A stretch of DNA of 64,000 nucleotides from Anaeramoeba ignava BMAN (taxonomy: Eukaryota > Protista > Anaeramoebae): NCBI GenBank assembly GCA_028826165.1, contig JAPDFW010000070.1, forward strand, positions 744,001-808,000. Direction: 5' to 3'. This document shows, one piece after another, positions 30,784 to 50,230 of this stretch. The position numbers and the translations under genes are program-made. The notes under the pieces are model-generated. The model saw only the letters and a list, made by a program, of their open reading frames with translations. It made no database searches and was not told the origin of the DNA. How positions within the stretch are numbered: position 1 is the stretch's first letter; the number at the start of each line of letters is the position of its first letter.

Positions 30784-30951
30784 GTTTAAAATAAAAATAA
30801 AAACAAAAACAAAAATAAAAATAAGAATAAAAAGTGAAAAAAAAAATGAAAAAAAAACTTTTAACGATTGTTTGTTTTTTTTATAAAACCAAAAATATCC
30901 ACTTTTTTTTAACGATTGTTTTTTTTTTTTTTTAAACAAACAATTTTAAAT

Positions 30952-31545
30952 TTAAAATATAAAACAATTTGAATTATTTTTTTTTGGAATTTGAATATTT
31001 GAATTTGAATTTGGATTTGGATTTAAATCTAAATCAAAAGGATATTTTCTAATTTCTCTTAAAAGTGTAAAAATAGTTTCTTCAATATTATATCTTGTTT
31101 TAGCAGATGTTTCATAAAAAGGACATCCATGTTTAATTGCAAATTCTTCTCCTTCTTCTTTTTTTATTACTCTTCTATCTTCAAGATCATTTTTGTTTCC
31201 AATAATAATAATAGGAAATTCTTCAACTTCTCTATATTTATAAATTTCATTCAAAAAATTTTCTAATTTATCAAAAGAATATTCATCAGTTATTGAATAA
31301 ACAACAATAAATCCATGTATTCTTTTGTAGAATTCATATTTAAAATAATTCCCCCAATCAAAGTAATAATTATCAAAAATTTCAATATCTATAATTTCAT
31401 TATCAATTTCAACTTGTTTTCTATAAGAATCTTCTATTGTTGGATCATATTCTTCAATAAATTTTGAATAACAGAATTGAATTGTAAATGTTGATTTACC
31501 AACTCCTCCTGCACCAGTTGTTGCAATTTTTACAAAAGGATCCAT
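30952..31545 (-). CDS. Ras-like GTPase, array copy 1
   Basis: [33 protein letters not shown]3 reads DNYYFDW. Confidence 0.92.
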   Translation of the reverse strand: MDPFVKIATTGAGGVGKSTFTIQFCYSKFIEEYDPTIEDSYRKQVEIDNEIIDIEIFDNYYFDWGNYFKYEFYKRIHGFIVVYSITDEYSFDKLENFLNEIYKYREVEEFPIIIIGNKNDLEDRRVIKKEEGEEFAIKHGCPFYETSAKTRYNIEETIFTLLREIRKYPFDLDLNPNPNSNSNIQIPKKNNSNCFIF

Positions 31546-31599
31546 TCCAAATTTTTTTGAAAAATGAAAAAAAAAATGAAAAAATAAAAAAATGAAAAA

Positions 31600-32990
31600 A
31601 TATTAATTTTTTAAAACTAAAAAATATAAAAAGAATAATATATTTTAAAAGAATAATATTTAAATAATAAAAATATTAATAATCTCTAATTAATTATAAT
31701 TAAAAAATTTAATATAAATTAAATAAATTAAAAAAGTGGAATAAACAAAATAAGTAAAAAATAAAATTAAATTGAAAATAAAAAATATAAAAATAATAAT
31801 ATATTTTGAAAGAATAATATTTAAATAATAAAAATATTAATAATATTTAATTAATTATAATTAAAAAATTTAATATAAATTAAAATAAATAAAAATTGGA
31901 ATAAATATTTTAAGTAAAAATAAAATTAAATAAATATAAAAATATGTAAATAATAATATATTTTTGGAAAGAATGATATCTAAATAATAAAAATATTAAT
32001 AATATTTAATTAATTATAATTAAAAATTTTGATATAAATTAAATAAATTAAAAAGTGGAATAAATAAAATAAGTAAAAATAAAATTAAATAAATATAAAA
32101 AATATGTAAATAATAATATATTTTGAAAGAATAATATTTGAATAATAAAAATATTAATAATATTTAATTAATTATAATTAAAAATTTTAATATAAATTAA
32201 ATAAATTAAAAAAGTGGAATAAATAAAATAAGTAAAAAATAAAATTAAATTGAAAATAAAAATATAGAAAGAATAATATATTTTGAAAGAATAATATTTA
32301 AATAATAAAAATATTAATAATATTTAATTAATTATAATTAAAAATTTGATATAAATTAAATAAAAATAAATTTAATAAAATTTAAATAAATATATTAAAT
32401 TAAATATAAAAAATATAAAAGAATAATATATTTTAAAAGAATAATATCTAAATAATAAAAATATTAATAAAATCTCTAATTAATTATAATTAAAAAATTT
32501 TGATATAAATTAAATAAATTAAAAAGTGGAAAAAATGAAAAATAAAAAAAAAAATATTAAATTTTTAAAAATAAAAATATAAAAATAATAATATATTTTG
32601 AAAGAATAATATTTAAATAATAAAAAAATATTAATAATATTTAATTAATTATAATTAAAAAATTTAATATAAATTAAATAAAATATTTTAAATAAAAATA
32701 AAATTTAATAAAATTTAAATAAATATATTAATTTTTTAAAATATAAAAAATATGTAAATAATAATATATTTTAAAAGAATAATATCTGAATAATAAAAAT
32801 ATTAATAATATTTAATTAATTATAATTAAAAATTTTAATATAAATTAAATAAAATATTTTAAATAAAAATAAAATTTAATAAAATTTAAATAAATATATT
32901 AATTTTTTTAAAAAAAAAATAAGAAATAATAATAATTTTAAAAAAATAATATCTAAAAAAATTAAAAATATTAATAATAATACATAATTA
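31600..32990. repeat. AT-rich complex satellite, copy B
   Basis: Same blocks as 19470-21495. Confidence 0.9.
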
Positions 32991-32991
32991 A

Positions 32992-33063
32992 AAATTAAAA
33001 ATTTATATAAATTAAACTAATTAAAAATGTTTGTAAACGGGGTTAAATAAAAATAAAAATGCA
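32992..33063 (+). pseudogene. tRNA-Gly remnant
   Basis: GTTTGT..CGGGGTT..ATGCATAA at the same spacing as the 3' half of the tRNA at 46961, in the same satellite context. Confidence 0.45.
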
Positions 33064-33391
33064 TAAATTTAAAAATTAATTTTTCTTTTTATTTTGAAAG
33101 AATAATATTTGAATAATAAAAATTTAATTATTTAATTATTTATTAATTAAAAATTTTTATTTTAAATTTTATAAATAAAACTTTTTTTAAATAAAATATT
33201 AAAAATTAAATTAAATTCTTTATAATTTATTCATAGAAAGAATTTATTTATTTATTTTTTAAATAATTTTTATTTATTTAATAAAATTTAATTTAATTCT
33301 TTATTTTATTTATTTATTTTATTAAATTAAATTTATTTTTATTCAAATAAATCAATTTAATTTCAAAAACAAAAATAATAAATAAAATCAA

Positions 33392-34010
33392 TTTAAAATA
33401 TTAAGCAATTTGATTTGGAATTTGATTTGGAATTTGAATTTGAATTTGAATTTAATCAAAAATTTGAATTTGAATTTGATTTGTGGAATTTAAATTTAAA
33501 TCAAAAGGATATTAAAATAATTTCTTTTGAAAAATAGTAAAAATAAATTCTTCAACATTATATCTTGTTTTAAAGATGTTTCATAAAAGGACATCCATGT
33601 TTAATTGCAAATTCTTCTCCTTCTTCTTTTAAAATTTAAATAAATATTAATTTTTAAAAATAAAAATAAGAAAAATAATTTAAACTTTTTATATTTATAA
33701 ATTTCTTTCAAAAATTTTCTAATTCATTAAAAGAATTTTTATCATTTATTGAATAAACAACAATAAATCCATAATTTTTCAAATTCATTTTTTTTATTAT
33801 TTTCAGTCCAATTTTCATTTAAATAATAAATTAATTTAAAATATCATTTATTTAAAGCATCTTCAATTGTTACAACTTGTTTTCTAAAAGAATCTTGTAT
33901 TGTTGGATCATAATTTTCATCTATTTATTGAATAACAAATTTGAATTATAAATTTTGATTTTCCACTTTTATATTTAAATATTAAATTAATTTAATTCTT
34001 TATTTATTTA
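33392..34010 (-). pseudogene. Degenerate Ras-like copy interleaved with satellite sequence
   Basis: Patches nearly identical to copy 34112-34729 ([24 protein letters not shown]), broken by stops and satellite patches. Confidence 0.7.
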
Positions 34011-34111
34011 TATTTTTTTTTATTTTTAAAATTTAAAAAAATGAAAAATGAAAAAATGAAAAATAAATTTTTAATTCAAATAAATCAATCTAATTTCAAA
34101 ACAAAATCAAT

Positions 34112-34729
34112 TTAAAATATTAAACAATTTGATTTGGAATTTGAATTTGAATTTGATTTTGAATTTGAATTTGAATTTGAATTTGAATTTGAATTTGGAT
34201 TTGAATTTAAATTTAAATCAAAAGGATATTTTCTAATTTCTCTTAAAAGAGTAAAAATAGATTCTTCAACATTATATCTTGTTTTAGCAGATGTTTCATA
34301 AAAAGGACATCCATGTTTAATTGCAAATTCTTCTCCTTCTTCTTTTTTTATTTGTCTTTGATCTTCAAGATCGTTTTTATTTCCAATAATAATAATAGGA
34401 AATTCATAAACTTTTTTATATTTATAAATTTCGTTCAAAAAATTTTCTAATTCATTAAAAGAATTTTTATCATTTATTGAATAAACAACAATAAATCCAT
34501 GAGTTTTTTCATAACTCATTTGCTTATAAAAATCAGTCCAATCTTCACAATAATAATAATCTAAAATATCAAGTGTTAAAGCATCTTCATCAATTACAAC
34601 TTGTTTTCTAAAAGAATCTTGTATTGTTGGATCATATTCCTCAATAAAATGTGAATAACAAAATTGATGAATAAATGTTGATTTACCAACTCCTCCATTT
34701 CCAATTATTGAAATTATTATTAAATCCAT
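34112..34729 (-). CDS. Ras-like GTPase, array copy
   Basis: GNGGVGKS, YDPTIQD, G3 DYYYCEDW, CLIF. Confidence 0.92.
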   Translation of the reverse strand: MDLIIISIIGNGGVGKSTFIHQFCYSHFIEEYDPTIQDSFRKQVVIDEDALTLDILDYYYCEDWTDFYKQMSYEKTHGFIVVYSINDKNSFNELENFLNEIYKYKKVYEFPIIIIGNKNDLEDQRQIKKEEGEEFAIKHGCPFYETSAKTRYNVEESIFTLLREIRKYPFDLNLNSNPNSNSNSNSNSNSKSNSNSNSKSNCLIF

Positions 34730-34840
34730 TTTATTTTTAAAATTTAAAAAAATGAAAAATGAAAAATGAAAAATGAAAAATAAATTTTAATTCAAATAAA
34801 TAAATCAAATATCAAAACAAAATAATAAATAAAAATCAAT

Positions 34841-35469
34841 TTAAAATATTAAACAATTTGATTTTGAATTTGATTTGAATTTGATTTTGAATTTGATTTG
34901 GAATTTGAATTTGAATTTGAATTTGAATTTGAATTTGATTTTGGATTTAATTCTGAATCAAAAGGATATTTTCTAATTTCTCTTAAAAGTGTAAAAATAG
35001 TTTCATCAATATTATATCTTGTTTTAGCAGATGTTTCAAAAAAAGGACAAAAATATTTAATTGCAAATTCTTCTCCTTCTTCTTTTGTTATTACTCTTTG
35101 GTCTTCAAGATCATTTTTATTTCCAATAATAATAATAGGAAAATCATCAGTTTTTTTAAATTTATAAATTTCTTTCAAATAATTTTCTAATTCATTAAAA
35201 GAATATTTATCATTCATTGAATAAACAACAATAAATCCATCTGTTTTTTCATAATTTCCTCTTTTGTAATAATCATTCCAATCATCATAATAATAATAAT
35301 CTAAAATTTCTATAATTAAAATTTCATCATCAATTTCAATTTGTTTTCTATAAATATCTTCTATTGTTGGATCATATTCCTCAATAAAATGTGAATAACA
35401 AAATTGTTCAATAACTGATTTTTTACCAACTCCTCCATTTCCAATTAATAAAATTTTTATTGGATTCAT
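34841..35469 (-). CDS. Ras-like GTPase, array copy (tail frameshift)
   Basis: GNGGVGKKS, G3 DYYYYDDW. CLIF-stop at 34841 is in another frame. Confidence 0.88.
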
Positions 35470-35555
35470 TTTATTTTTAAAATTTAAAAAAATGAAAAAA
35501 TGAAAAAATGAAAAATCAATTTAATATCAAAACAAAATAATAAATAAAAATCAAT

Positions 35556-36211
35556 TTAAAATATTAAACAATTTGATTTGAAAAAATTTGAATTTGAATT
35601 TGGAATTTGAATTTGAATTTGAATTTGATTTTGATTTTGAATTTGAATTTGAATTTGAATTTGAATTTGAATTTGAATTTGAATTTAAATCAAAAGGATA
35701 TTTTCTAATTTCTCTTAAAAGTGTAAAAATAGTTTCATCAATATTATATCTTGTTTTAGCAGATGTTTCATAAAAAGGGCATCCATGTTTAATTGCAAAT
35801 TCTTCTCCTTCTTCTTTTTTTTATTTGTCTTTGGTCTTCAAGATCATTTTTATTTCCAATAATAATAATAGGAAAATCATCAGTTTTTTTATATTTATAA
35901 ATTTTATTCAAATAATTTTCTAATTCATCAAAAGAATATTTATCAATTATTGAATAAACAACAATAAATCCATGTGATTTTTCATAATTTTCTTGTTGGA
36001 AGTTATAATTCCATTCACTATCATAACAAGATCCAAAATCTAAAATTTCAATAAATTAAAATTTCATTATCAATTTCAAAACTTGTTTTCTATAAGAATC
36101 TTCTATTGTTGGATCATAATATTGAATAACATTTGGACAACAAAATTGAGTTGTAAATGTTGTTTTCCCAACTCCTCCATTTCCAATTATTGAAATTATT
36201 ATTAAATCCAT
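35556..36211 (-). CDS. Ras-like GTPase, array copy (multiple frameshifts; may be a pseudogene)
   Basis: [11 protein letters not shown]3 DFGSCYDSEW, CLIF. Indels fall in homopolymers. Confidence 0.7.
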
Positions 36212-36325
36212 TTTATTTTTAAAATTTAAAAAAATGAAAAAATGAAAAAATGAAAAAATAAAAAATAAATTTTTAATTCAAATAAATCAATCAAATTTCA
36301 AAATAAAATAATAAATAAAATCAAT

Positions 36326-36913
36326 TTAAAATATTAAACAATTTGATTTGGAATTTGATTTGGAATTTGAATTTGAATTTGAATTTGAATTTAAATTTAA
36401 ATCAAAAGGATATTTTCTAATTTCTCTTAAAAGTGTAAAAACAGTTTCTTCAACATTACTTCTTGTTTTAGCAGATGTTTCAAAAAAAGGACAAAAATAT
36501 TTATTTGCAAATTCTTCTCCTTCTTCTTTTGTTATTACTCTTTGGTCTTCAAGATCATTTTTATTTCCAATAATAATAATAGGAAATTCCTCAACTTCTC
36601 TATATTTATAAATTTCATTCAAATAATTTTCTAATTCATTAAAAGAATATTTATCATTTATTGAATAAACAACAATAAATCCATGTGGTTCTTGATAAAT
36701 TCTTTGTTTCATATAATCAAGATCACCCCAATAATCCATATAATTCGCAAATTCAATAATTAAAATTTCATTATCAATTACAACTTGTTTTCTATAAGAA
36801 TCTTCTATTCCTCGATCATAATATTGAATAAATTGTGAATAACAGAATTGTTCAATAACTGATTTTTTTCCAACTCCTCCATTTCCAATTATTAAAATTT
36901 TTATTGGATTCAT
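36326..36913 (-). CDS. Ras-like GTPase, array copy
   Basis: GKKS, YDRGIED, G3 ANYMDYWGD, CLIF. Confidence 0.92.
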   Translation of the reverse strand: MNPIKILIIGNGGVGKKSVIEQFCYSQFIQYYDRGIEDSYRKQVVIDNEILIIEFANYMDYWGDLDYMKQRIYQEPHGFIVVYSINDKYSFNELENYLNEIYKYREVEEFPIIIIGNKNDLEDQRVITKEEGEEFANKYFCPFFETSAKTRSNVEETVFTLLREIRKYPFDLNLNSNSNSNSNSKSNSKSNCLIF

Positions 36914-37020
36914 TTTATTTTTAAAATTTAAAAAAATGAAAAAATGAAAAAATGAAAAAATAAATTTTTAATTCAAATAAATAAATCAAATATCAAAACA
37001 AAATAATAAATAAAATCAAT

Positions 37021-37611
37021 TTAAAATATTAAACAATTTGATTTGGAATTTGAATTTGAATTTGAATTTGAATTTGATTTTGGATTTAATTCTAAATCAA
37101 AAGGATATTTTCTAATTTCTCTTAAAAGTGTAAAAAAAGTTTCATCAATATTATTTCTTGTTTTAGCAGATGTTTCATAAAAAGGACATCCATGCTTAAT
37201 TGCAAATTCATTTCCCTCTTCTTTTTTTATTTGTCTTTTTCTTCAAGATCATTTTTATTTCCAATAATAATAATAGGAAATTCATTAAACTTTTTTATAT
37301 TTATAAATTTTATTCAAATAATTTTCTAATTCATTAAAAGAATTTTTATCATTTATTGAATAAACAACAATAAATCCATGTGATTTTTCATAATTTTCTT
37401 GTTGGAAGTTATAATTCCATTCACTATCATAATAATAATCTAAAATTTCTATAATTAAAATTTCATCATCAATTACAATTTGTTTTCTAAAAGATTCTTC
37501 TATTGTTGGATCATAATATTGAATAAATTTTGAATAACAAAATTGAGTTGTAAATGTTGATTTACCAACTCCTCCATTTCCAATTATTGAAATTATTATT
37601 ATTTTATCCAT
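37021..37611 (-). CDS. Ras-like GTPase, array copy (frameshifted)
   Basis: GKSTF, G3 DYYYDSEW, CLIF. Confidence 0.75.
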
Positions 37612-37725
37612 TTTATTTTTATTTTTAAAATTTAAAAAAATGAAAAAATGAAAAAATGAAAAAATAAATTTTTTATTCAAATAAATCAATCTAATTTCAA
37701 AACAAAATAATAAATAAAAATCAAT

Positions 37726-38325
37726 TTAAAATATTAAACAATTTGATTTGGAATTTGAATTTGAATTTGATTTGAAATTTGATTTTGAATTTGATTTTGA
37801 ATTTGAATTTAAATCAAAAGGATATTTTCTAATTTCTCTTAAAAGTGTAAAAACAGTTTCTTCAATATTATTTCTTGTTTTAGCAGATGTTTCAAAAAAA
37901 GGACAAAAATATTTATTCGCAAATTCTTCTCCTTCTTCTTTTGATATTACTCTTTGTTCTTCAAGATCATTTTTATTTCCAATAATAATAATAGGAAATT
38001 CATTAACTTTTTTAAATTTATAAATTTCTTTCAAATAATTTTCTAATTCATTAAAAGAATATTTATCATTTATTGAATAAACAACAATAAATCCATCTGT
38101 TTTTTCATAATTTCCTCTTTTGTAATAATCAGTACAATCATTATCATAATAATAATCTAAAATTTCTATAATTAAAATTTCATCATCAATTACAACTTGT
38201 TTTCTAAAAGATTCTTCTATTGTTGGATCATAATCTTCAATAAATTTTGAATAACAAAATTGAATTATAAATGTTGATTTACCAACTCCTCCATTTCCAA
38301 TTATTGAAATTTTTATTGGATTCAT
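37726..38325 (-). CDS. Ras-like GTPase, array copy
   Basis: Start MNPIKI at 38325, G3 DYYYDNDC, CLIF. Confidence 0.92.
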   Translation of the reverse strand: MNPIKISIIGNGGVGKSTFIIQFCYSKFIEDYDPTIEESFRKQVVIDDEILIIEILDYYYDNDCTDYYKRGNYEKTDGFIVVYSINDKYSFNELENYLKEIYKFKKVNEFPIIIIGNKNDLEEQRVISKEEGEEFANKYFCPFFETSAKTRNNIEETVFTLLREIRKYPFDLNSNSKSNSKSNFKSNSNSNSKSNCLIF

Positions 38326-38438
38326 TTTATTTTTATTTTTAAAATTTAAAAAAATGAAAAAATGAAAAAATGAAAAAATAAATTTTAATTCAAATAAATC
38401 AATCAAATTTCAAAACAAAATAATAAATAAAAATCAAT

Positions 38439-39026
38439 TTAAAATATTAAACAATTTGATTTGGAATTTGAATTTGAATTTGAATTTGAATTTGATTTGG
38501 AATTTGAATCTAAATCAAAAGGATATTTTCTAATTTCTCTTAAAAGTGTAAAAAAAGTTTCATCAATATTATTTCTTGTTTTAGCAGATGTTTCAAAAAA
38601 AGGACAAAAATATTTAATTGCAAATTCTTCTCCTTCTTCTTTTGTTATTACTCTTTGGTCTTCAAGATCATTTTTATTTCCAATAATAATAATAGGAAAA
38701 TCATCAGTTTTTTTAAATTTATAAATTTCTTTCAAATAATTTTCTAATTTATTAAAAGAATATTTATCATTTATTGAATAAACAACAATAAATCCATCTG
38801 TTTTTTCATATATTCGTTGTTTTATTCTATTATTCCATTCATCATCATAATAATAATCCAAAATTTCTATAATTAAAATTTCATCATCAATTACAACTTG
38901 TTTTCTAAAAGAATCTTCCATTACTGGATCATATTCCTCAATAAAATATGAATAACAAAATTGAAAAGAAAATGCTTTTTTTCCAACTCCTCCATTTCCA
39001 ATTATTGAAATTTTTATTGGATTCAT
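38439..39026 (-). CDS. Ras-like GTPase, array copy
   Basis: GKKA, YDPVMED, G3 DYYYDDEW, CLIF. Confidence 0.92.
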   Translation of the reverse strand: MNPIKISIIGNGGVGKKAFSFQFCYSYFIEEYDPVMEDSFRKQVVIDDEILIIEILDYYYDDEWNNRIKQRIYEKTDGFIVVYSINDKYSFNKLENYLKEIYKFKKTDDFPIIIIGNKNDLEDQRVITKEEGEEFAIKYFCPFFETSAKTRNNIDETFFTLLREIRKYPFDLDSNSKSNSNSNSNSNSKSNCLIF

Positions 39027-39127
39027 TTTATTTTTAAAATTTAAAAAAATGAAAAAATGAAAAAATGAAAAAATAAAAAATAAATTTTAATTCAAATAAA
39101 TCAATTTAATATCAAAACAAAATTAAT

Positions 39128-39708
39128 TTAAAATATTAAACAATTTGATTTGGAATTTGATTTGGAATTTGAATTTAAATTTGAATTTGAATCAAAAGAA
39201 TATTTTCTAATTTCTCTTAAAAGAGTAAAAATAGTTTCTTCAACATTATATCTTGTTTTAGCAGATGTTTCATAAAAAGGACATCCATGTTTAATTGCAA
39301 ATTCTTCTCCTTCTTCTTTTTGTTATTACTCTTTGGTCTTCAAGATCATTTTTATTTCCAATAATAATAATAGGAAAATCATCAACTTTTTTAAATTCAT
39401 AAATTTCTTTCAAATAATTTTGTAATTCATTAAAAGAATTTTTATCATTTATTGAATAAACAACAATAAATCCATCTGTTTTTTCATAATTTCCTCTTTT
39501 GTAATAATCATTCCAATCTTCATAATAATAATAATCGTAAAATTTCTATAATTAAAATTTCATCATCAATTTCAATTTGTTTTCTATAAGAATCTTCTAT
39601 TGTTGGATCATAATCTTCAACGAATTGTGAATAACAAAATTGAATTGTAAATGTTGTTTTCCCAACTCCTCCATTTCCAATTATTGAAATTATTATTATT
39701 TTATCCAT
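39128..39708 (-). CDS. Ras-like GTPase, array copy (frameshifted, including a non-homopolymer insertion near 39537)
   Basis: GKTTF, corrected G3 [12 protein letters not shown]. Confidence 0.7.
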
Positions 39709-39818
39709 TTTATTTTTATTTTTAAAATTTAAAAAAATGAAAAATGAAAAAATGAAAAATAAATTTTAATTCAAATAAATCAATCTAATTTCAAAACAAA
39801 ATAATAAATAAAATCAAT

Positions 39819-40405
39819 TTAAAATATTAAACAATTTGATTTGGAATTTGAATTGAATTTGAATTTGAATTTGAATTTGATTTTGAATCAAAAGGATATT
39901 TTCTAATTTCTCTTAAAAGTGTAAAAACAGTTTCTTCAATATTATATCTTGTTTTAGCAGATGTTTCATAAAAAGGGCATCCATGTTTAATTGCAAATTC
40001 ATTTCCTTCTTCTTTTGATATTTGTCTTTCATCTTCAAGATCGTTTTTGTTTCCAATAATAATAATAATAGGAAAATCATTAACTTTTTTATATTTATAA
40101 ATTTCATTCAAATAATTTTCTAATTCATTAAAAGAATATTTATCATTTATTGAATAAACAACAATAAATCCTTGTGTTTTTTCATATATTTTTTGCTTTA
40201 TTCTATTATTCCATTCATCATAATAATGATAATCTAAAATTTCTATAATTAAAATTTCATTATCAATTTCAATTTGTTTTCTAAAAGATTCTTCTATCAT
40301 TGAATCATATTCCTCAACGAATTGTGAATAACAAAATTGAATTGTAAATGATGTTTTCCCAACTCCTCCATTTCCAATTATTGAAATTATTGGATTTTTA
40401 TCCAT
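39819..40405 (-). CDS. Ras-like GTPase, array copy (tail frameshift)
   Basis: GKTSF, YDSMIEE, G3 DYHYYDEW. Confidence 0.88.
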
Positions 40406-40496
40406 TTTATTTTTATTTTTAAAATTTAAAAAAATGAAAAAATGAAAAATAAATTTTAATTCAAATAAATCAATTTAATTTTAAAACAAAATTAAT

Positions 40497-41078
40497 TTAA
40501 AATATTAAACAATTTGATTTGGAATTTGAATTTGATTTGGAATTTAAATTTGAATTTGAATCTAAATCAAAAGGATATTTTCTAATTTCTCTTAAAAGTG
40601 TAAAAACAGTTTCTTCAATATTATATCTTGTTTTAGCAGATGTTTCATAAAAAGGGCATCCATTTTTAATTGCAAATTCATTTCCTTCTTCTTTTGATAT
40701 TTGTCTTTCATCTTCAAGATCGTTTTTATTTCCAATAATAATAATAGGAAAATCATTAACTTTTTTATATTTATAAATTTCATTCAAATAATTTTCTAAT
40801 TCATTAAAAGAATATTTATCATTTATTGAATAAACAACAATAAATCCTTGTGTTTTTTCATATATTTTTTGCTTTATTCTATTATTCCATTCATCATAAT
40901 AATGATAATCTAAAATTTCTATATTTAAAGTTTCATTATCAATTTCAATTTGTTTTCTAAAAGAATCTTCTATTGTTGGATCATAATATTCAATAAATTG
41001 TGAATAACATAATTGAATTGTAAATGTTGATTTACCAACTCCTCCATTTCCAATTATTGAAATTGTTGTTAAATTCAT
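40497..41078 (-). CDS. Ras-like GTPase, array copy
   Basis: GKSTF, G3 DYHYYDEW, CLIF. Confidence 0.92.
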   Translation of the reverse strand: MNLTTISIIGNGGVGKSTFTIQLCYSQFIEYYDPTIEDSFRKQIEIDNETLNIEILDYHYYDEWNNRIKQKIYEKTQGFIVVYSINDKYSFNELENYLNEIYKYKKVNDFPIIIIGNKNDLEDERQISKEEGNEFAIKNGCPFYETSAKTRYNIEETVFTLLREIRKYPFDLDSNSNLNSKSNSNSKSNCLIF

Positions 41079-41186
41079 TTTATTTTTATTTTTAAAATTT
41101 AAAAAAAATGAAAAAATGAAAAAATGAAAAAATGAAAAATAAATTTTAATTCAAACAAATCAATTTAATTTCAAAACAAAATTAAT

Positions 41187-41765
41187 TTAAAATATTAAAC
41201 AATTTGATTTGGAATTTGAATTTGATTTTGATTTGGAATTTGAATTGGAATCAAAAGGATATTTTCTAATTTCTCTTAAAAGAGTAAAAATAGTTTCTTC
41301 AACATTATATCTTGTTTTAGCAGATGTTTCATAAAAAGGGCATCCATGTTTAATTGCAAATTCGTTTCCTTCTTCTTTTGATATTTGTCTTTCATCTTCA
41401 AGATCGTTTTTATTTCCAATAATAATAATAGGAAAATCATTAACTTTTTTATATTTATAAATTTCATTCAAATAATTTTCTAATTCATCAAAAGAATTTT
41501 TATCAGTTATTGAATAAACAAAAATAAATCCATGTGTTTTTTCATAATTTCCTTGTTTGAAGTTATAATTCCATTCATCACCATAAAAACAATCTAAAAT
41601 TTCTATATTTAAAGTTTCTTCATCAAGTTCAATTTGTTTTCTAAAAATATCTTCTATTGCTGAATCATAATATTCAATAAATTGTGAATAACAAAATTGA
41701 GTTGTAAATGATGTTTTACCAACTCCCCCATTTCCAATTATTGAAATTATTGGATTTTTATCCAT
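41187..41765 (-). CDS. Ras-like GTPase, array copy
   Basis: YDSAIED, G3 DCFYGDEW, CLIF. Confidence 0.92.
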   Translation of the reverse strand: MDKNPIISIIGNGGVGKTSFTTQFCYSQFIEYYDSAIEDIFRKQIELDEETLNIEILDCFYGDEWNYNFKQGNYEKTHGFIFVYSITDKNSFDELENYLNEIYKYKKVNDFPIIIIGNKNDLEDERQISKEEGNEFAIKHGCPFYETSAKTRYNVEETIFTLLREIRKYPFDSNSNSKSKSNSNSKSNCLIF

Positions 41766-41878
41766 TTTATTTTTATTTTTAAAAATTTAAAAATTGGAAA
41801 AATTGAAAAAATGAAAATATAATTTTTTTAATTCAAATAAATCAATCAAATTTCAAAACAAAATAAATAAAAATCAAT

Positions 41879-42035
41879 TTAAAATATTAAACAATTTGAA
41901 TTTAAATTTTGAATCAAAAGGATATTTTCTAATTTCTCTTAAAAGTGTAAAAATAGTTTCATCAATATTATTTCTTGTTTTAGCAGATGTTTCATAAAAA
42001 GAACAAAAATATTTTATTTGTAAATTCATTTCCTT
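41879..42035 (-). pseudogene. 3' fragment of a Ras-like copy
   Basis: Only [33 protein letters not shown] is present, about 50 bp from the kelch-BTB stop. Confidence 0.8.
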
Positions 42036-42086
42036 TTCCTTCTTTATTTTAAAGTTTCTAAAAAAAATGAAATTTGGATTAAACAA

Positions 42087-45000
42087 TTATTTCTTTTTTC
42101 CCGCTTTTTTCTCTTGTTTTTTTGCTTTTTCCTTTTCTTTCTTGGAATTCTTAATTTCTTTTTCATCAAAAAATTGGAATAATAAATTTTTTTCTTTTCG
42201 GGAAAATGAACCAAAATTTTCAACAATAAAAGATTGAAAAAATTCAAAAAGATCTGGATAAGCATTAAATTGAAGAGATTGAATATATTGAAGAAATAAA
42301 TCCTTTGACAAGTTTTTGGAGATGTAAGAAATTAATTGTTTTCTAAAAGGAGATGATTGCGACAATCCATAAAACTCAATAGCATCAATTAATTGGAAAG
42401 CAATATCAATATTTGGAATGGATGATTCAATTGAGTTTGTATACAAAAATTTAACAAACAATTCCACTGCCTCAAAACTTCTCCCAGATAAATCGGGTGC
42501 CTCACAACTATCATCTTGTGTAGATATAAACATTCCTCTGTATAAATTTGATCGAGCTGCAAGAATAAATTGGTGAGTCGGTATTCTTTTTTGATCCACT
42601 TTGATATAGAAATCAAAAGGATAACTTTGATTTGTTTCTTTATCAAGAAGAAATGCGAAATTGGATTTTTCTTGGTTAGTTTTTTCTTGTGACAAAATTG
42701 AATCAAGTAATTTAACAAACTTTGACAAATCAAGAGGAATTTGAATCATTGATGTTGAACTTTGATTTTTTTGGATGCATTCTTGAATTTCTGAGACAAA
42801 TTGCTTAAGTTGAGAAAATTCCAAGTGAAATTGCTCCAAAAACATTTTATTAAGAAATCCACCACAATAAATCCAATTGAGTAAATTTAAAATGATATTT
42901 TTGGGTGTTACTCTGCATTTCTGAAGAAATATTTTTTCAAATTGGGGAGGAATTGCTAAGTTAATGAATTGTTTATGTGCTTTTATTATTGATCTATCCA
43001 AGCATTCAATTTCGAAATTGGTTAATTCTTCTCTTTTCAAAAAGTCTTCCATGTCCATCAAAAAAGAATTTGATTTTTTGAAAGTGAGCTTATTAATTTC
43101 TTTTGAAAAATTCCAACCAATCTCTTGAACTCCTCCATAAAATTGATAAAGAGTATTATCACGAAGAACAATAGATTGTCCAAATTTTGGTTTATATATT
43201 TGTTCTCCTGAAACAACAAATTCCCAAGAAACTGGGTTTAATAAATTAAGACGATTTAAATCATTAAAATAAATATCATCTGAGAGACCATTTAAGATAT
43301 AAAGGTAGTTATTATAAACAAAAGAGGAATGGCCACATCTTTTAAGCGTGATTTAAATTTAATATTATATTTAATATTTATTTTATATTTAATATTTATT
43401 TTATATTTAATATTTATTTTATATTTAATATTTATTTTATATTTAATATTTATTTTATATTTAATATTTATTTTATATTTAATATTTATTTTATATTTAA
43501 TATTTATTTTATATTTAATATTTATTTTATATTTAATATTTATTTTATATTTAATATTTATTTTATATTTAATATTTATTTTGAATTTAATATTTATTTT
43601 ATATTTAATATTTATTTTATATTTAATATTTATTTTATATTTAATATTTATTTTGTATTTAATATTTATTTTATATTTAATATTTATTTTATATTTAATA
43701 TTTATTTTATATTTAATATTTATTTTATATTTATTTTTAATTTTATTTATTTTATATTTAATATTTATTTTATATTTAATTTTATTTTATATATTTTTTA
43801 TCATTTATTTTATATTTTAATATTTTATTTTATATTTTTAATATTGTATTTAATATTTATTTTATTAATTTTGTTTTTTTATTTTATATTTAATTTTATT
43901 TTATATTTTAATATTTTATTTTTTTATTTTATTTTTAATATTTTATTTTTTTTTTAATATTTTTTTTTTTTATTTTATATTTATTTTTAATATTTTTTAT
44001 TTATTTTTTTTTTTTATTTTATATTTTATTTATTTTTATTTAATATTTATTTTATATTTAATATTTATTTTATATTTATTTTATTTAATATTTATTTTAT
44101 ATTTAATATTTATTTTAATTTTTTTATTTTGAATTTAATATTTATTTTGAATTTAATATTTATTTTGAATTTGACATTTATTTTATATTTAATATTTTAT
44201 TTTTTTTTGTTAATATTTATTTTAATATTTTATTTATTTTTTTTTTTTATATTTAATATTTTATTTTTAATTTTATTTATTTTTGTATTTTTATTTTATA
44301 TTTAATATTTATTTTTTATTTTATTTTAATTTAATATTTATTTTGATTTAATATTTATTTTATATTTAATATTTATTTTTATATTTAATTTAATATTTAT
44401 TTTGTATTTAATATTTATTTTATATTTTATTTATTTTATATTTCAATATTTTTTTATTTTAATTTTATATATTTATATATTTTATTTTTAATATTTAATT
44501 TATTTTACATTTAATATTTAATTTTATATTTAATATTTTATATTTAATATTTATTTTTATATTTTATTTTAATATTTTATTTTAATTTAATATTTATTTT
44601 ATATTTAATATTTATTTTATATTTAATATTTATTTTATATTTAATATTTATTTTATATTTAATATTTATTTTATATTTAATATTTATTTTATATTTAATA
44701 TTTATTTTATATTTAATATTTATTTTTATATTTAATATTTATTTTGAATTTAATATTTATTTTATATTTAATATTTTAAATATTTATTTTTTTTAGTTTA
44801 TTTTTATATTTAATATTTATTTTATATTTAATATTTATTTTATATTTAATATTTATTTTATATTTTAATATTTTATTTTATATTTATGTTTAATATTTAT
44901 TTTATATTTAATATTTATTTTATATTTAATATTTATTTTATATTTAATATTTATTTTATATTTAATATTTATTTTGAATTTAATATTTATTTTATATTTA

Positions 45001-45851
45001 ATATTTATTTTATATTTAATATTTATTTTATATTTAATATTTATTTTATATTTAATATTTATTTTATATTTAATATTTATTTTAGATTTAATATTTATTT
45101 TGGATTTAATATTTATTTTGAATTTCTTTACCTTTCTTGTGGAGCATTTTCTGTATTTATAAGTGAACATTCAAAATTATCTAAATTAACCTTATATAAT
45201 GATTTTACTGTTTTATAAGATGAATTTGAACCACCATAAATATATAAATTATTATTAAAAATTTCAGAAGTATGACGAAACAAAGGGGTTAATTTAGTAT
45301 TTTTAATAGGAAGTTGAGTAAAAGTAAAAGTATTTAAATCAAGACAAAGAAATTTATCAAGAACAACATCAGACTTAGAAATTCCTCCGAAAATATAAAC
45401 TTTATCATTGTAAAGAGAACCTGAATGATAACACATTGGAGGAACTATTTCTTGATTTGAATAATTGATTTGGCTCCATTTTCTAGTAGCTAAATTGAGT
45501 TTCCATAAATCATTTAAATCATTACCATCAGATCCTCCAAAAATATATAATATGTCTTTAAAAAAAAAGGCAAGTTGACCACAACGTGGACTTGGTTTAA
45601 CTGAGTTTGTTTGAACTAAATCCCAAGTTTTTTTTTCTTTTAAAATTTTGAATTAAAATTAAAATTCGTTTTAAAATTAAAATTATAATTGATTTACTGA
45701 TATCAAAAACGTGAAGATCATTATATCTAATTTGAGTATCATATCCTCCAAAAAAATATATTTTATCTTCATGTAATAATGTTGCTTGTCCATATCTTTC
45801 TCTTGGTTTATTTTTTTCTGAGTCTTTAATTGCTTTCCAAGATAATTGCAT
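42087..45851 (-). CDS. LZTR1-like kelch-repeat plus BTB-BTB protein; exons 45698-45851, 45132-45636, 42087-43338
   Basis: Kelch repeats RYGQ..IYFFGG, RCGQ..LYIFGG, CYHS..VYIFGG, FRHT..LYIYGG and RCGHS; BTB motifs IKAHKQF and THQFILAARSNLYRGMF. GT-AG junctions are in frame. Confidence 0.85.
43350..45120. repeat. Intronic 18-bp tandem repeat (TATATTTAATATTTATTT)n
   Basis: Fills the 1.8-kb intron 43339-45131; degenerate in the middle. Confidence 0.9.
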
Positions 45852-45914
45852 TTTTTTTTAATGAAAAATGAAAAAATGAAAAAATGAAAAAATGAAAAAA
45901 TGAAAAAATGAAAA

Positions 45915-46945
45915 TTTAAATAAAAAAGTGGAATAAAATATATTTTGAAAGAATAATATTTAAATAATAAAAATATTAATAATATTTAATTAATTATAAT
46001 TAAAAATTTTAATATAAATTAAATAAAAAATTTTAAATAAAAAAAAATTTAATAAAAATTAAATAAATATATTAATTTTTTAAATATAAAAAATATATAA
46101 AGAATAATATATTTTGAAAGAATAATATTTAAATAATAAAAATATTAATAATATTTAATTAATTATAATTAAAAATTTTAATATAAATTAAATAAAAAAT
46201 TTTAAATAAAAAAAAATTTAATAAAAATTAAATAAATATATTAATTTTTAAAAATAAAAATATAAAAATAATAATATATTTTGAAAGAATGATATTTGAA
46301 TAATAAAAATATTGATAATATTTAATTAATTATAATTAAAAATTTTGATATAAATTAAATAAAATTTTAAATAAAAATAAAAATTTAATAAAATTTAAAT
46401 AAATATATTAATTTTTTAAAAATAAAAAATATAGAAATAATAATATATTTTGGAAAGAATAATATTTAAATAATAAAAATATTAATAATATCTAATTAAT
46501 TATAATTAAAAATTTTTAATATAAATTAAATTAATCAAAATTTGGAATAAAATAAAATAAGTAAAAATAAAATTAAATAAATATAAAAATATATAAAGAA
46601 TAATATATTTTGAAAGAATGATATTTAAATAATAAAAATATTGATAATATCTAATTAATTATAATTAAAAAATTTAATATAAATTAAATAAAATATTTTA
46701 AATAAAAATAAAATTTAATAAAATTTAAATAAATATATTAATTTTTTAAAAATAAAAAATAAGTAAATAATAATATATTTTGAAAGAATGATATTTAAAT
46801 AATAAAAATATTGATAATATTTAATTAATTATAATTAAAAATTTTGATATAAATTAAATAAAATATTTTAAATAAAAAAATAAATTTAATAAAATTTAAA
46901 TAAATATATTAATTTTTTAAAAATAAAAAATAAGAAAAAAAAAAT
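45915..46945. repeat. AT-rich complex satellite, copy C
   Basis: Same blocks as copies A and B. Confidence 0.9.
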
Positions 46946-46960
46946 AATTTAAATTAAAAA

Positions 46961-47031
46961 GCATAGATAGTACAGTGGTAGTATACAAGCTTTCCATGTT
47001 TGTGGTCGGGGTTCGATTCCCCGTCTATGCA
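46961..47031 (+). tRNA. tRNA-Gly (TCC)
   Basis: Acceptor GCATAGA/TCTATGC, D-arm GTAC-AGTGGTA-GTAT, anticodon stem CAAGC/GTTTG with loop TTTCCAT, T-arm CGGGG-TTCGATT-CCCCG, followed by a poly-T terminator. Confidence 0.95.
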
Positions 47032-47306
47032 TAATTTTTTTTTTAAATTAATTTTTATTTTTTTTTATTTAATTATTTAAATTAATTTGATTCTTTATCT
47101 ATTTATTTATATTTTTATTATTATTTATTATATTCCACTTTTTTATTTAATTATTAAATTAATTTAATTCTTTATCTATTTATTTTATTATTTTTATTAT
47201 TTATTTTTTATATTCCACTTTTTTATTTAATTATTAAATTAATTTAATTCTTTATTTATTTATTCATTGCTCCATTTTATTTATTCTTTTTGATTTTGAA
47301 TTTCAT

Positions 47307-47904
47307 TTAAAAAATAAAACAATTTTCATTTGAATTTGAATTTGATTTGAAATTTGATTTTGATTTTGATTTTGAATTTGATTTTGAGTCAAAAGGATAT
47401 TTTCTAATTTCTCTTAAAAGAGTAAAAAAAATTTTATCAGCATCATCTTTTGTTTTACCAGTTATTTCATAAAAAGAACACCCATTTTTAATTGCAAATT
47501 CATTTCCTTCTTCTTTTGATATTTACTCTTTGATCTTCAAGATCATTTTTATTTCCAATAATAATAATAGGAAAATCATTAACTTTTTTATATTTATAAA
47601 TTTCATTCAAATAATTTTCTAAATCATTAAACGAATCTCTATCAGTTATTGAATAAATTAAAATAAATCCTTGAGTTTTTTCATATTCCACTTTTTGGGC
47701 TTCACGGTTCCATTTATGATAACAACAAGAATCAAAAATTTCCAGATATAAAATTTCGTCATCAATTTTACAAGACATTTTATAAGAAGCTTCTGTTTGT
47801 GGTGGATCATAAATTGGATCATAACTTGGACAACAAAATCTAGTTGTAAAAGTTGTTTTTCCAACTTCTTTATTTCCAATAACTGAAATTGTTATTTTAT
47901 CCAT
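47307..47904 (-). CDS. Ras-like GTPase, second sub-array (frameshift near 47522)
   Basis: GNKEVGKT, YDPPQTE, G3 DSCCYHKW, G5 EITGK, CFIF. Confidence 0.8.
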
Positions 47905-48009
47905 TTTTTTAAAATTGAGAAAATGAAAAATGAAAAAATGAAAAATAAATTTTTATTCAAATAAATCAATCAATTTAATTTCAAAATAAAATAATAAATA
48001 AAAACCAAT

Positions 48010-48748
48010 TTAAAATATTAAACAATTTGAATTTGAATTTGAATTAGAATTTGATTTTGATTTTGATTTTGATTTTGATTTTGATTTTGATTTTGAATTT
48101 GATTTTGAATTTGATTTTGAATTTGAATTTGAATTTGAATTTGAATTTGAATTTGATTTAGAATTTGAATTTGATTTTGAATTTGATTTTGAATTTGAAT
48201 TTGAATTTGATTTTTGAATTTGAATTTGATTTTGAATCAAAAGGATATTTTCGAATTTCTCTTAAAAGAGTTATAATTGTCTCATCAATATTATATCTTG
48301 CTTTAGTAGATATTTCAAAAAAAGGACAACCATTTTTAAATGCAAATTCTTCTCCTTCTTCTTTTTTTACTTGTCTTAGATTTTCAACATCATTTTTATT
48401 TCCAACAATAATAATAGGAAAATCATCAGAATTTTTAATAAGATAAATTTCTTTCAAATAATCTTGCAATCTATTAAAAGAATTTCTATCAATAATTGAA
48501 TAAATTAATACAAAACCATGTGATTGTTTATAAACTTCTTTTGTGAAACCATAAATGAGATAATCATTTTGATAAAAATCATAAAGTTCAACAATTAAAA
48601 TTTCATTATCAATTTCAATTTGTTTTCTATAACTTTCTATTGTTGGATCATATTCTTCAATAAATTGTGAAAAGATAAATTGAGTTGTAAATGTTGATTT
48701 TCCAACTTCTTTTGGACCAATAATTGGAATTAATAAAGGATTATTCAT
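48010..48748 (-). CDS. Ras-like GTPase, second sub-array (tail frameshift)
   Basis: GPKEVGKS, G3 DFYQNDY, long NS/KS tail, CLIF. Confidence 0.85.
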
Positions 48749-48865
48749 TATTTATTTTTTTTTTCAATTTTTTAAATGAAAGAAAAAAAATGAAAATTGG
48801 GAAAGGAAGAATAAAATCTCTAAAAAAAGTTTTTTTATTCCACTTTTTTATTAATCCAAAATAAG

Positions 48866-49486
48866 TTAAAATATTAAACAATTTGGATTTGAATTTGATT
48901 TTGAATTTAATTTTGAATTTGAATTTGAATTTGATTTTGAATTTGATTTTGAATTTGATTTTGAATCAAAAGGATATTTTCGAATTTCTCTTAAAAGAGT
49001 TAAAAAAGATTCATCAACATTATTTCTTCTACCAGAGGAAGCTTCATAAAAAGAACATCCATTTTTAAATGCAAATTCTTCTCCTTCTTCTTTTTTTACT
49101 TGTCTTAGATTTTCAACATCATTTTTATTTCCAATAATAACAATAGGAAAATCATCACAATTTTTGATAAGATAAATTTCATTCAAATAATTTTGCAATT
49201 CATCAAAAGAATTTCTATCAATAATTGAATAAACAACAATAAAACCTTGTGATTTTCGATAATTTTCTTTTTTTAAATTTTGGATCTCATCTGAATCAGT
49301 AAAAAAATAATCATAATCCAAAATTTCAACAATTAAAATTTCATTATCAATTTCAATTTGTTTTCTATAACTTTCTATTGTTGGATCATATTCTTCAATA
49401 ATGCGTGAATAACAAAATTGAGTTGACAAGGCTGATTTTCCAACTTCTTTTGCACCAATAATTGAAATTGTTATCATTTCTTGCAT
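48866..49486 (-). CDS. Ras-like GTPase, second sub-array
   Basis: GAKEVGKS, G3 DYDYFFTD, G5 EASSG, CLIF. Confidence 0.92.
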   Translation of the reverse strand: MQEMITISIIGAKEVGKSALSTQFCYSRIIEEYDPTIESYRKQIEIDNEILIVEILDYDYFFTDSDEIQNLKKENYRKSQGFIVVYSIIDRNSFDELQNYLNEIYLIKNCDDFPIVIIGNKNDVENLRQVKKEEGEEFAFKNGCSFYEASSGRRNNVDESFLTLLREIRKYPFDSKSNSKSNSKSNSNSNSKLNSKSNSNPNCLIF

Positions 49487-49624
49487 TTGTTAAAAAAAAT
49501 GAAAGAAAAAAATGAAAGTATCATTTCGAAAATAATATTTTTTTAATAATATTACTAAACAATAAAGTATTTGGGAATTAAATGGAAAAAACAAAACACG
49601 AATAAAACTGAAATTTTTAATCAA

Positions 49625-50230
49625 TTAAAATAAGAAACAGTTTGAATTGTTTGAATTGTTTGAATTGTTTGAATTGTTTGAATTGTTTGAATTGTTTGAA
49701 TTTGATTGAAATGAATCAAAAGGATATTTTCTAATTTCTCTTAAAAGAGTAGAAATTGTATCATCAATTTTATCTCTTGTTTTAGTAGAAATTTCAAAAA
49801 AAGGACAAAAATGGTTAATTGCAAATTCTTTTCCTTCTTCAGTTGAAATAATTCTTTGATTTTCAAGATCATTTTTATTTCCAACAATAATAATAGGAAA
49901 ATCATCAGAATTTTTAATACGATAAATTTCATTCAAATAATTTTGCAATTCATCAAAAGAATTTCTATCAATAATTGAATAAATTAAAACAAAACCATGT
50001 GATTTTTTATAAGTTTCCTTTCTAATATAATCATCAATCCATGGATCATAATAAACTGTATCAATAATTTCGAGAATAAGCAATTCATTATCAATTTCAA
50101 TTTGTTTTCTATAAGATTCTTCTATTGATTGATAATAATCTTGAACAAAAAATGATCGAATAAATTGAATTGTAAATGAGGATTTTCCAACAGCTCCACT
50201 TCCAATTACTGCAATAGTAGGTTTTTGCAT
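49625..50230 (-). CDS. Ras-like GTPase, second sub-array
   Basis: GSGAVGKS, YYQSIEE, G3 DTVYYDPW, CFLF. Confidence 0.92.
   Translation of the reverse strand: MQKPTIAVIGSGAVGKSSFTIQFIRSFFVQDYYQSIEESYRKQIEIDNELLILEIIDTVYYDPWIDDYIRKETYKKSHGFVLIYSIIDRNSFDELQNYLNEIYRIKNSDDFPIIIVGNKNDLENQRIISTEEGKEFAINHFCPFFEISTKTRDKIDDTISTLLREIRKYPFDSFQSNSNNSNNSNNSNNSNNSNNSNCFLF

Follow-up and report, generated by a model that had tools for sequence, protein, structure and literature searches.

Tandem Ras-like genes without the DTAGQE motif and with a variable switch II in Anaeramoeba ignava

Ras-like loci of the array and their motifs

We analysed a 64,000-nucleotide stretch of the Anaeramoeba ignava BMAN genome (contig JAPDFW010000070.1, positions 744,001 to 808,000; hereafter the window), in which a tandem array of Ras-like genes occupies positions 30952-50230 on the minus strand. 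The locus set was built from the list of open reading frames (ORFs) and a tblastn search of one array copy against the window. It comprises 18 loci (c01-c18, Table 1), where an earlier reading of the same DNA from its letters alone (the sequence-only reading) had counted about 16. The G domain is uninterrupted in 12 of them (c01, c03, c04, c06, c08, c09, c11, c12, c13, c16, c17 and c18), and the other six (c02, c05, c07, c10, c14 and c15) are broken or partial. A gene with Kelch and BTB domains splits the array into a core (c01-c14) and an older group (c15-c18), and the G+C content is ~19% in the window and ~16% across the array. The DTAGQE motif was found in none of the 17 loci that include the switch II region, which bears out the sequence-only reading; DTAGQEE was read in each of the 14 A. 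ignava Ras paralogs examined from outside the array, as well as in the best A. flamelloides matches.

All tested copies matched the Pfam Ras family (PF00071) over 161 of 162 profile positions, with E values of 1e-38 to 1e-45, and the best solved relative was human KRAS, with ~40% identity and identical numbering through residue 63. An AlphaFold (AF2) model of c12 showed Ras topology with a mean predicted local distance difference test (pLDDT) score of 85.8, and its top Foldseek matches were Ras, KRAS, RIT1 and Ral, with template modelling (TM) scores by target of 0.87-0.96. In the switch II region, the model has a short loop at residues 58-62, followed by a helix at residues 63-75 in the position of Ras alpha2. 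The Ras scaffold proposed in the sequence-only reading was recovered by structure prediction; the segment that it described as a CDR-like loop is predicted as a short loop and alpha2 and not as a long free loop. An unspliced mini-intron as the origin of the segment was rejected, as the segment stands in for Ras residues 58-72 with nearly one-to-one correspondence and is predicted to form L4 and alpha2.

The motifs named in the sequence-only reading (GxxxxGK, YDxxIE, GF[IV]xxYS and GNKND) are present, and so are the loops that it quoted, two of which come from the broken copies c05 and c15. Specifically, the P-loop GxxxxGK is retained across the array, F28 is retained in 11 of the 12 open copies, and GNKND is invariant wherever the region is present, while TSAK is found in the nine core copies and is degenerate in c16-c18. 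D57 is retained in all copies but c06, and G60 and Q61 are absent from every copy. In addition, T35 is replaced in c06 (Gly), c09 (Val), c11 (Met), c13 (Ala) and c18 (Ser), the Mg-binding S17 by Lys in c04, c06 and c09, and G12-G13 by Lys-Glu in c15-c17; the full motif set apart from G3 is found only in c01, c03, c08 and c12. The effector loop YDPTIEDSY is exact, or altered by Y40F or D38E, in c01, c04, c08 and c12, and in c03, c16 and c17 it differs by one additional change or lacks one residue; YDPTIEDS[YF] is kept in about half of the copies. A family-specific stretch containing KYPFD lies past alpha5 and is invariant in every copy having the region. Of the 12 open copies, nine read in frame into the CAAX box noted in the sequence-only reading (CLIF, CFIF or CFLF). 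The remaining three (c04, c11 and c16) still encode an intact SNCLIF-stop, but in a frame other than that of the G domain, the frame having been lost through a shift in a simple repeat coding for Asn, Ser and Lys. These three tail shifts either arose very recently or are errors of assembly in the low-complexity DNA.

Given that G60 and Q61 are lost everywhere, and T35, S17 or G12/G13 in many copies, the array proteins would neither sense the gamma-phosphate nor carry out Ras-type GTP hydrolysis, and they are most likely non-cycling pseudoGTPases. Most copies should still bind guanine nucleotide as a structural cofactor, since the P-loop, F28, NKND and, mostly, SAK are kept. On the other hand, S17K in c04, c06 and c09 suggests impaired Mg-nucleotide binding. 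The C-terminal boxes point to prenylation, and "prenylated pseudo-GTPase", the term used in the sequence-only reading, seems the natural description given the Ras scaffold, the loss of G60 and Q61 and the T35, S17 and G12/G13 lesions in subsets of copies.

Table 1. Array loci and adjoining features, with positions in the window
Feature	Position	Strand	Description
Rad50/SMC-like ORF	27328..30939	-	1203-aa ORF; AAA_23 (Rad50/SMC-like) N-terminus, long coiled-coil-like sequence; ends in NQNLNQ-type repeat, directly upstream of c01
c01	30952..31545	-	open ORF, 197 aa, CFIF in frame; loop NYYFDWGNYFKYEF, 1 residue shorter than others
c02	33485..33918	-	heavily decayed, several stops and frame changes; family-type Trp-containing switch II retained
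c03	34112..34729	-	open ORF, 205 aa, CLIF in frame; complete G1, T35, D57, G4, G5
c04	34849..35469	-	open G domain, S17K; SNCLIF-stop (34849-34942) out of frame after low-complexity tail shift
c05	35686..36211	-	broken: in-frame stop in beta3, frameshift past NKND; loop FGSCYDSEWNYNFQQEN
c06	36326..36913	-	open ORF, CLIF in frame; S17K, T35G, D57N (more degenerate than any other open copy)
c07	37087..37611	-	two frame changes flank NKND region; N-terminal 109 residues including loop open
c08	37726..38325	-	open ORF, CLIF in frame; mosaic: N-terminus c12-like, c04-like from codon ~48
c09	38439..39026	-	open ORF, CLIF in frame, S17K, T35V; mosaic: upstream spacer and loop c12-like, 3' half c04-like
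c10	39191..39708	-	broken across three frames; loop near-identical to c04 loop
c11	39827..40405	-	open G domain, T35M; CAAX (39827-39887) out of frame after tail shift
c12	40497..41078	-	open ORF, 193 aa, CLIF in frame; full G1/T35/D57/G4/G5; copy used for folding
c13	41187..41765	-	open ORF, CLIF in frame, T35A
c14	41913..42050	-	C-terminal fragment only, G5 to KYPFD; starts directly after BTB ORF stop codon
Kelch (N-terminal) and BTB (C-terminal) gene	42087..45851	-	interrupts array, co-directional; split by long AT-rich simple repeats
Simple repeats	43329..45218		between BTB and Kelch ORFs; long tandem simple repeats, G+C near 10%; ILYLIF on plus strand, KINIKY on minus strand
c15	47388..47904	-	frameshift past NKND; P-loop GNKEVGKT; loop SCCYHKWNREAQKVE
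c16	48158..48748	-	open G domain; G12G13 to KE; switch I 1 residue shorter; CAAX in other frame (ORF 48010-48240)
c17	48866..49486	-	open ORF, CLIF in frame; G12G13 to KE; loop 3 residues longer; G5 degenerate (ASSG)
c18	49625..50230	-	open ORF, CFLF in frame; earliest-branching copy; switch II starts DTVYYDPW, sole copy with T58

Variability of switch II and distribution of the family

The variability of the array was examined with 16 loops, taken from the 12 open and four broken copies. Mean column entropy was 1.92 bits at residues 58-72 and 0.67 bits in the rest, and no other 15-residue stretch of the alignment varies as much as the one beginning at residue 58. Mean pairwise nucleotide identity among the nine core copies was 82% in the upstream spacer (110 nt), 84% in codons 1-57, 64% in the loop, 92% in the middle and 93% in the C-terminal part, indicating that divergence in the loop is double that of the neighbouring non-coding DNA, and that the scaffold past the loop has diverged less than this DNA. 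Moreover, in copy pairs whose spacers were at least 90% identical, the loops were often 51-69% identical. The sequence-only reading had therefore located the variability hot spot correctly. Its term "CDR-like" (after complementarity-determining regions) suits the concentration of variation in a surface segment, but not the near-fixed length (15 residues in 12 of 16 loops), the semi-conserved Y58, W64 and K69, or the repertoire of about 10 loop types that shift between copies as blocks.

The loop also has a skewed composition. Tyr makes up 22% of its residues; Trp (5.3%) and Asp (11%) are found at 16 and 5.7 times the expectation from base composition, and Ile and Leu at 0.1-0.2 times, so that the Tyr/Trp enrichment reported in the sequence-only reading is real and non-neutral. 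The 16 aligned loops comprise 245 codons without a single stop, against an expectation of 10.7% stops among random codons. The absence of stops and the skewed composition indicate that the loop is not at mutational equilibrium, which argues against pure drift without proving adaptive diversification. No donor cassette or template repeat of the kind used by diversity-generating systems was detected: outside the 16 copies whose loops could be aligned, the window contains no loop-like DNA.

In the phylogenetic tree, the array formed a single clade (support 100/100) on a long stem (0.76), placed within the Ras group with its sister in an unresolved polytomy. An old split separates c16-c18 from the core nine, both of which have the same architecture. 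A whole-genome search found no locus of the array family elsewhere in the 42.8 Mb A. ignava assembly, and word-indexed and exhaustive public protein searches (1.84 billion representatives) returned nothing above 50% identity outside the array; the tandem family is specific to A. ignava. We found no paper mentioning the array genes, and the A. ignava genome paper covers Rab and trafficking expansions, not Ras. Note that three unrelated protist Ras-like proteins with an odd, Trp-containing switch II were seen, namely P0228 (EukProt), P0136 (NCBI/Logan) and P0194 (Paradermamoeba levis), with switch II sequences such as DTTGYDECW, DTAADEPW and DTVRDENSW. P0228 was considered as an array member and rejected, being only a weak sister on long branches with a Shimodaira-Hasegawa-like approximate likelihood ratio test (SH-aLRT) value of 88 (83 without the switch II columns). 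Likewise, the A. flamelloides "ras gtpase-related" protein P0046 has a partly degenerate switch II, DTACSEE (G60C, Q61S), and groups with the canonical RasD-like genes of A. flamelloides, outside the array.

A second Ras-like tandem array, of which 18 open copies were read, lies on contig C101 at 161.5-178.8 kb (161500-178800; loci L031 and L032). It is an independent clade in the tree and is also specific to A. ignava. Its members end in CLLM or CFLM, and the 3' half is strongly conserved. Variability again peaks at switch II, with the most variable 15-column stretch beginning at G60, and G3 shows graded decay from DTAGQEE to DTAxxEE and beyond, still starting with DT; G60 is retained in six of the 18 copies, Q61 in four and both in one. 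The two arrays have in common tandem arrangement, species specificity, a CAAX box and a switch II hot spot, whereas the Tyr-run loop is confined to the main array. Two more tandem clusters (C59:153700-167900 and C81:344600-351100) match only the C-terminal half of a Ras query (~66-175); the matches lie inside ORFs of 340-415 aa, which may encode multidomain proteins with partial G domains.

Gene conversion and possible diversifying selection or decay in the array

We next estimated the ratio of nonsynonymous to synonymous substitution rates (dN/dS, omega) with the codon model GY94+F3X4 in IQ-TREE, the likelihood of which was reproduced exactly by our own implementation. The sequence-only reading had expected omega above 1 in switches I and II and far below 1 in the scaffold. 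The scaffold omega was 0.27, indicating purifying selection, although it rose to 0.65 with F1X4. With the scaffold tree and the synonymous clock fixed, the loop omega was 1.92, with a likelihood ratio test (LRT) statistic of 24.3 for the comparison with omega = 1 and of 195.6 for that with the scaffold omega. Sites with individual omega above 1 were four in the loop and one elsewhere; none was in switch I, which is not hypervariable, contrary to that expectation.

These values would fit adaptive diversification, in which selection would maintain switch II as a variable surface for recognition while the Ras scaffold stays constant (to bind varied partners, say, or in decoys for bacterial effectors that attack Ras), with diversity arising by point mutation and spreading by cassette-like gene conversion. 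The excess divergence of the loops over the spacers, even where spacers are at least 90% identical, their Tyr/Trp/Asp-rich composition far from neutral expectation and their transfer between scaffolds as blocks point the same way. Known toxins target Ras at the switch I residues Y32, D33 and R41, and all three stay conserved in the array. In addition, A. ignava harbours symbionts and feeds on bacteria (PMC11550330). However, the loop estimate assumes that the loops share the genealogy of the scaffold, and this was disproved: c08 and c09 are recombination mosaics of c12-like and c04-like parts (permutation p <=1/200), and because copies are mosaic, the scaffold tree is the wrong genealogy for the loops. 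Synonymous divergence was raised in the loop as well; at amino-acid-identical codons it was 13.6% versus 6.8%, with 67 differing pairs versus 19 expected. Moreover, when omega and the synonymous scale were fitted jointly, the scale ran to infinity (saturation) and omega was not identifiable. The loops also show almost no length variation and only about 10 types, and the array is absent from the transcriptome-derived protein set of EukProt described below. Taken together, the expected excess over 1 was obtained for the loop only on the scaffold tree, diversifying selection on the loop is not secure, and we regard adaptive diversification as unlikely. The data fit either selection that keeps the loops different or an old, weakly constrained segment that escapes the gene conversion homogenising its flanks. 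Two further estimates were set aside. A free IQ-TREE codon fit of the loop alone, in which branch lengths reached the upper bound and omega was 0.05-0.32, was rejected as saturated and over-fitted; uncorrected Nei-Gojobori ratios, ~1 everywhere, were judged misleading because at ~16% G+C an A/T change at the third position is mostly nonsynonymous.

The array might alternatively be functionless and decaying: a Ras gene would have undergone a recent burst of duplication, the switch would have been lost early, and the redundant or silent copies would be drifting to pseudogenes, with apparent conservation produced solely by gene-conversion homogenisation. Gene conversion is indeed demonstrable, six of the 18 loci are broken, the CAAX box is out of frame in another three, further lesions (S17K, T35 replacements, D57N, degenerate G5) are scattered among the copies, and uncorrected pN and pS are about equal. 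Furthermore, none of the 10 recorded array proteins is found in the EukProt A. ignava transcriptome-derived set, all being known solely from the NCBI genome annotation, and members of the C101 array are absent from it too, whereas two canonical A. ignava Ras paralogs occur there; this absence is weak evidence because the set represents one transcriptome and paralog families assemble badly, but it bears on lack of expression, which the sequence-only reading had named among the outcomes that would refute it. On the other hand, functionless copies would hardly be expected to give a scaffold omega of 0.27, a coding scaffold of 92-93% identity beside a spacer of 82%, or 12 open G domains of ~170 codons where every tenth random codon or so is a stop. 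The invariance of GNKND and the KYPFD-containing stretch, the stop-free loops far from mutational equilibrium, and the architecture retained on both sides of the old split between c16-c18 and the core nine likewise speak against it. We therefore consider such decay rather improbable.

We lean, at slightly better than an even chance, towards a lipid-anchored family of non-cycling Ras-fold proteins in which the former face for guanine nucleotide exchange factors (GEFs), GTPase-activating proteins (GAPs) and effectors evolves fast under a compositional constraint, and whose copies turn over by duplication, decay and gene conversion. According to this model, the array would encode geranylgeranyl-type Ras-fold proteins (CAAX ending in F) that have lost GTP/GDP switching. 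The guanine and phosphate pocket would hold the nucleotide as a structural cofactor in most copies, and the loss of G60 and Q61 (together with T35, S17 or G12/G13) would leave the proteins unable to sense the gamma-phosphate or to hydrolyse GTP, whether on their own or with the help of a GAP. Switch II (L4 and alpha2), the face on which RasGEF, RasGAP and some effectors normally dock, would thereby be released from the GTPase cycle and free to evolve very fast; its preference for Tyr, Trp, Asp and Asn and avoidance of aliphatics would fit an exposed, possibly partner-binding surface. Gene conversion would homogenise the 3' two thirds of the genes and move loops between copies as blocks, with turnover by duplication and pseudogenisation. 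The products may work constitutively in Ras signalling while tethered to a membrane, either as adaptors or as competitors; as the Ras effector loop is kept in about half of the copies, they could plausibly compete with canonical Ras for the partners of switch I.

Several points weigh against the lipid-anchored, non-cycling family. Nucleotide binding and the loss of hydrolysis are read from motifs, and S17K in three copies argues that some copies do not bind Mg-nucleotide. The purifying selection on the scaffold depends on the model, omega being 0.65 with F1X4 and ~1 by uncorrected Nei-Gojobori counts. The six broken loci of the 18, the three lost CAAX frames and the absence from the EukProt set count on the same side, and some of the frameshifts, including some that define the pseudogenes, could be assembly errors in homopolymer-rich DNA. 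A further reading, in which the Ras fold serves as a constant membrane-anchored scaffold for a Tyr/Trp-rich switch II repertoire, diversified by mutation and shuffled between copies by gene conversion for recognition of, or as decoys for, proteins of prey, pathogens or symbionts, with the C101 array as a second, younger repertoire, appears to us very doubtful; a decoy or recognition function is speculation.

Neighbouring genes and relation to known GTPases

LZTR1 is a Ras-specific CUL3 adaptor, and the Kelch ORF at 45128-45436 within the array had LZTR1 as its best match in the Protein Data Bank (9mey_B, E 7.5e-13). The gene was considered as a possible LZTR1 orthologue; note that the genome contains ~180 Kelch-propeller matches, many of them far stronger than this neighbour, that its BTB part is generic, and that the Kelch-BTB gene is interrupted by ~1.9 kb of simple repeats. 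The position of c14, adjoining the BTB stop codon (41874-42086, minus strand), resembles the junction left by a deletion, or a fusion that has since decayed.

To our knowledge, loss of the DxxG glycine is extremely rare in the Ras subfamily. In the array, an entire family is without it while keeping the pocket and the lipid anchor, and the C101 array shows intermediate steps. The two arrays thus offer a natural series on the fate of the Ras fold after switching stops and on the evolution of the GEF/GAP docking face once it is free of the cycle. If the variation is adaptive, the array would represent a novel type of variable binding family acting inside the cell, in a protist known for an elaborate bacterial symbiosis; if it is neutral, it would be a clean example of gene conversion and relaxed constraint mimicking a hypervariable loop, and a caution for immune-like readings of similar arrays.

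Compared with canonical Ras (the RasD-like paralogs of A. ignava and human KRAS, HRAS and NRAS), the array proteins are ~40-48% identical, with a fold TM score of ~0.9, and share the P-loop, F28, NKxD, SAK and CAAX. However, residues rich in Tyr, His and Asp take the place of T58-A59-G60-Q61-E62, alpha2 has a different surface and is one residue longer, the linker is Asn/Ser-rich instead of polybasic, the invariant KYPFD after alpha5 is specific to the family, and T35, S17 or G12/G13 is missing in subsets of copies.

The closest known analogues are the RGK GTPases and atypical GTPases such as Rnd and RhoH, although the array shows the defining features of neither. In the RGK proteins (Rad, Rem, Rem2 and Gem/Kir), G3 reads DxWE with a conserved switch II Trp, G4 and G5 are kept, and canonical switching is thought not to take place (PMC4081519). 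Both groups belong to the Ras family, depart from DxxG in G3, carry a Trp in the switch II region and keep G4 and G5. However, the array loop reads D-Y-Y-Y-x-[DE]-[DE]-W, with the Trp seven residues past D57, and not DxWE; in addition, RGK proteins are single conserved metazoan genes, whereas the array is a variable tandem family, and no phylogenetic link between them was seen. RGK proteins are not known to carry a CAAX box, which the array has, and the array is without the long N- and C-terminal extensions of the RGK type. As for the atypical GTPases, Rnd1-3 and RhoH are constitutively GTP-bound and regulated by expression and turnover, not by cycling. Like nucleotide-binding pseudoGTPases in general, they have lost the catalytic Gln and/or Gly12-type residues and kept the pocket and the lipid anchor. 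The array would fall under the pseudoGTPase concept (PMC12490416, PMC5593906). However, proteins of the Rnd1-3 and RhoH type keep the DxxG glycine G60 and a conserved switch II, whereas in the array G60 is lost everywhere and switch II varies between copies.

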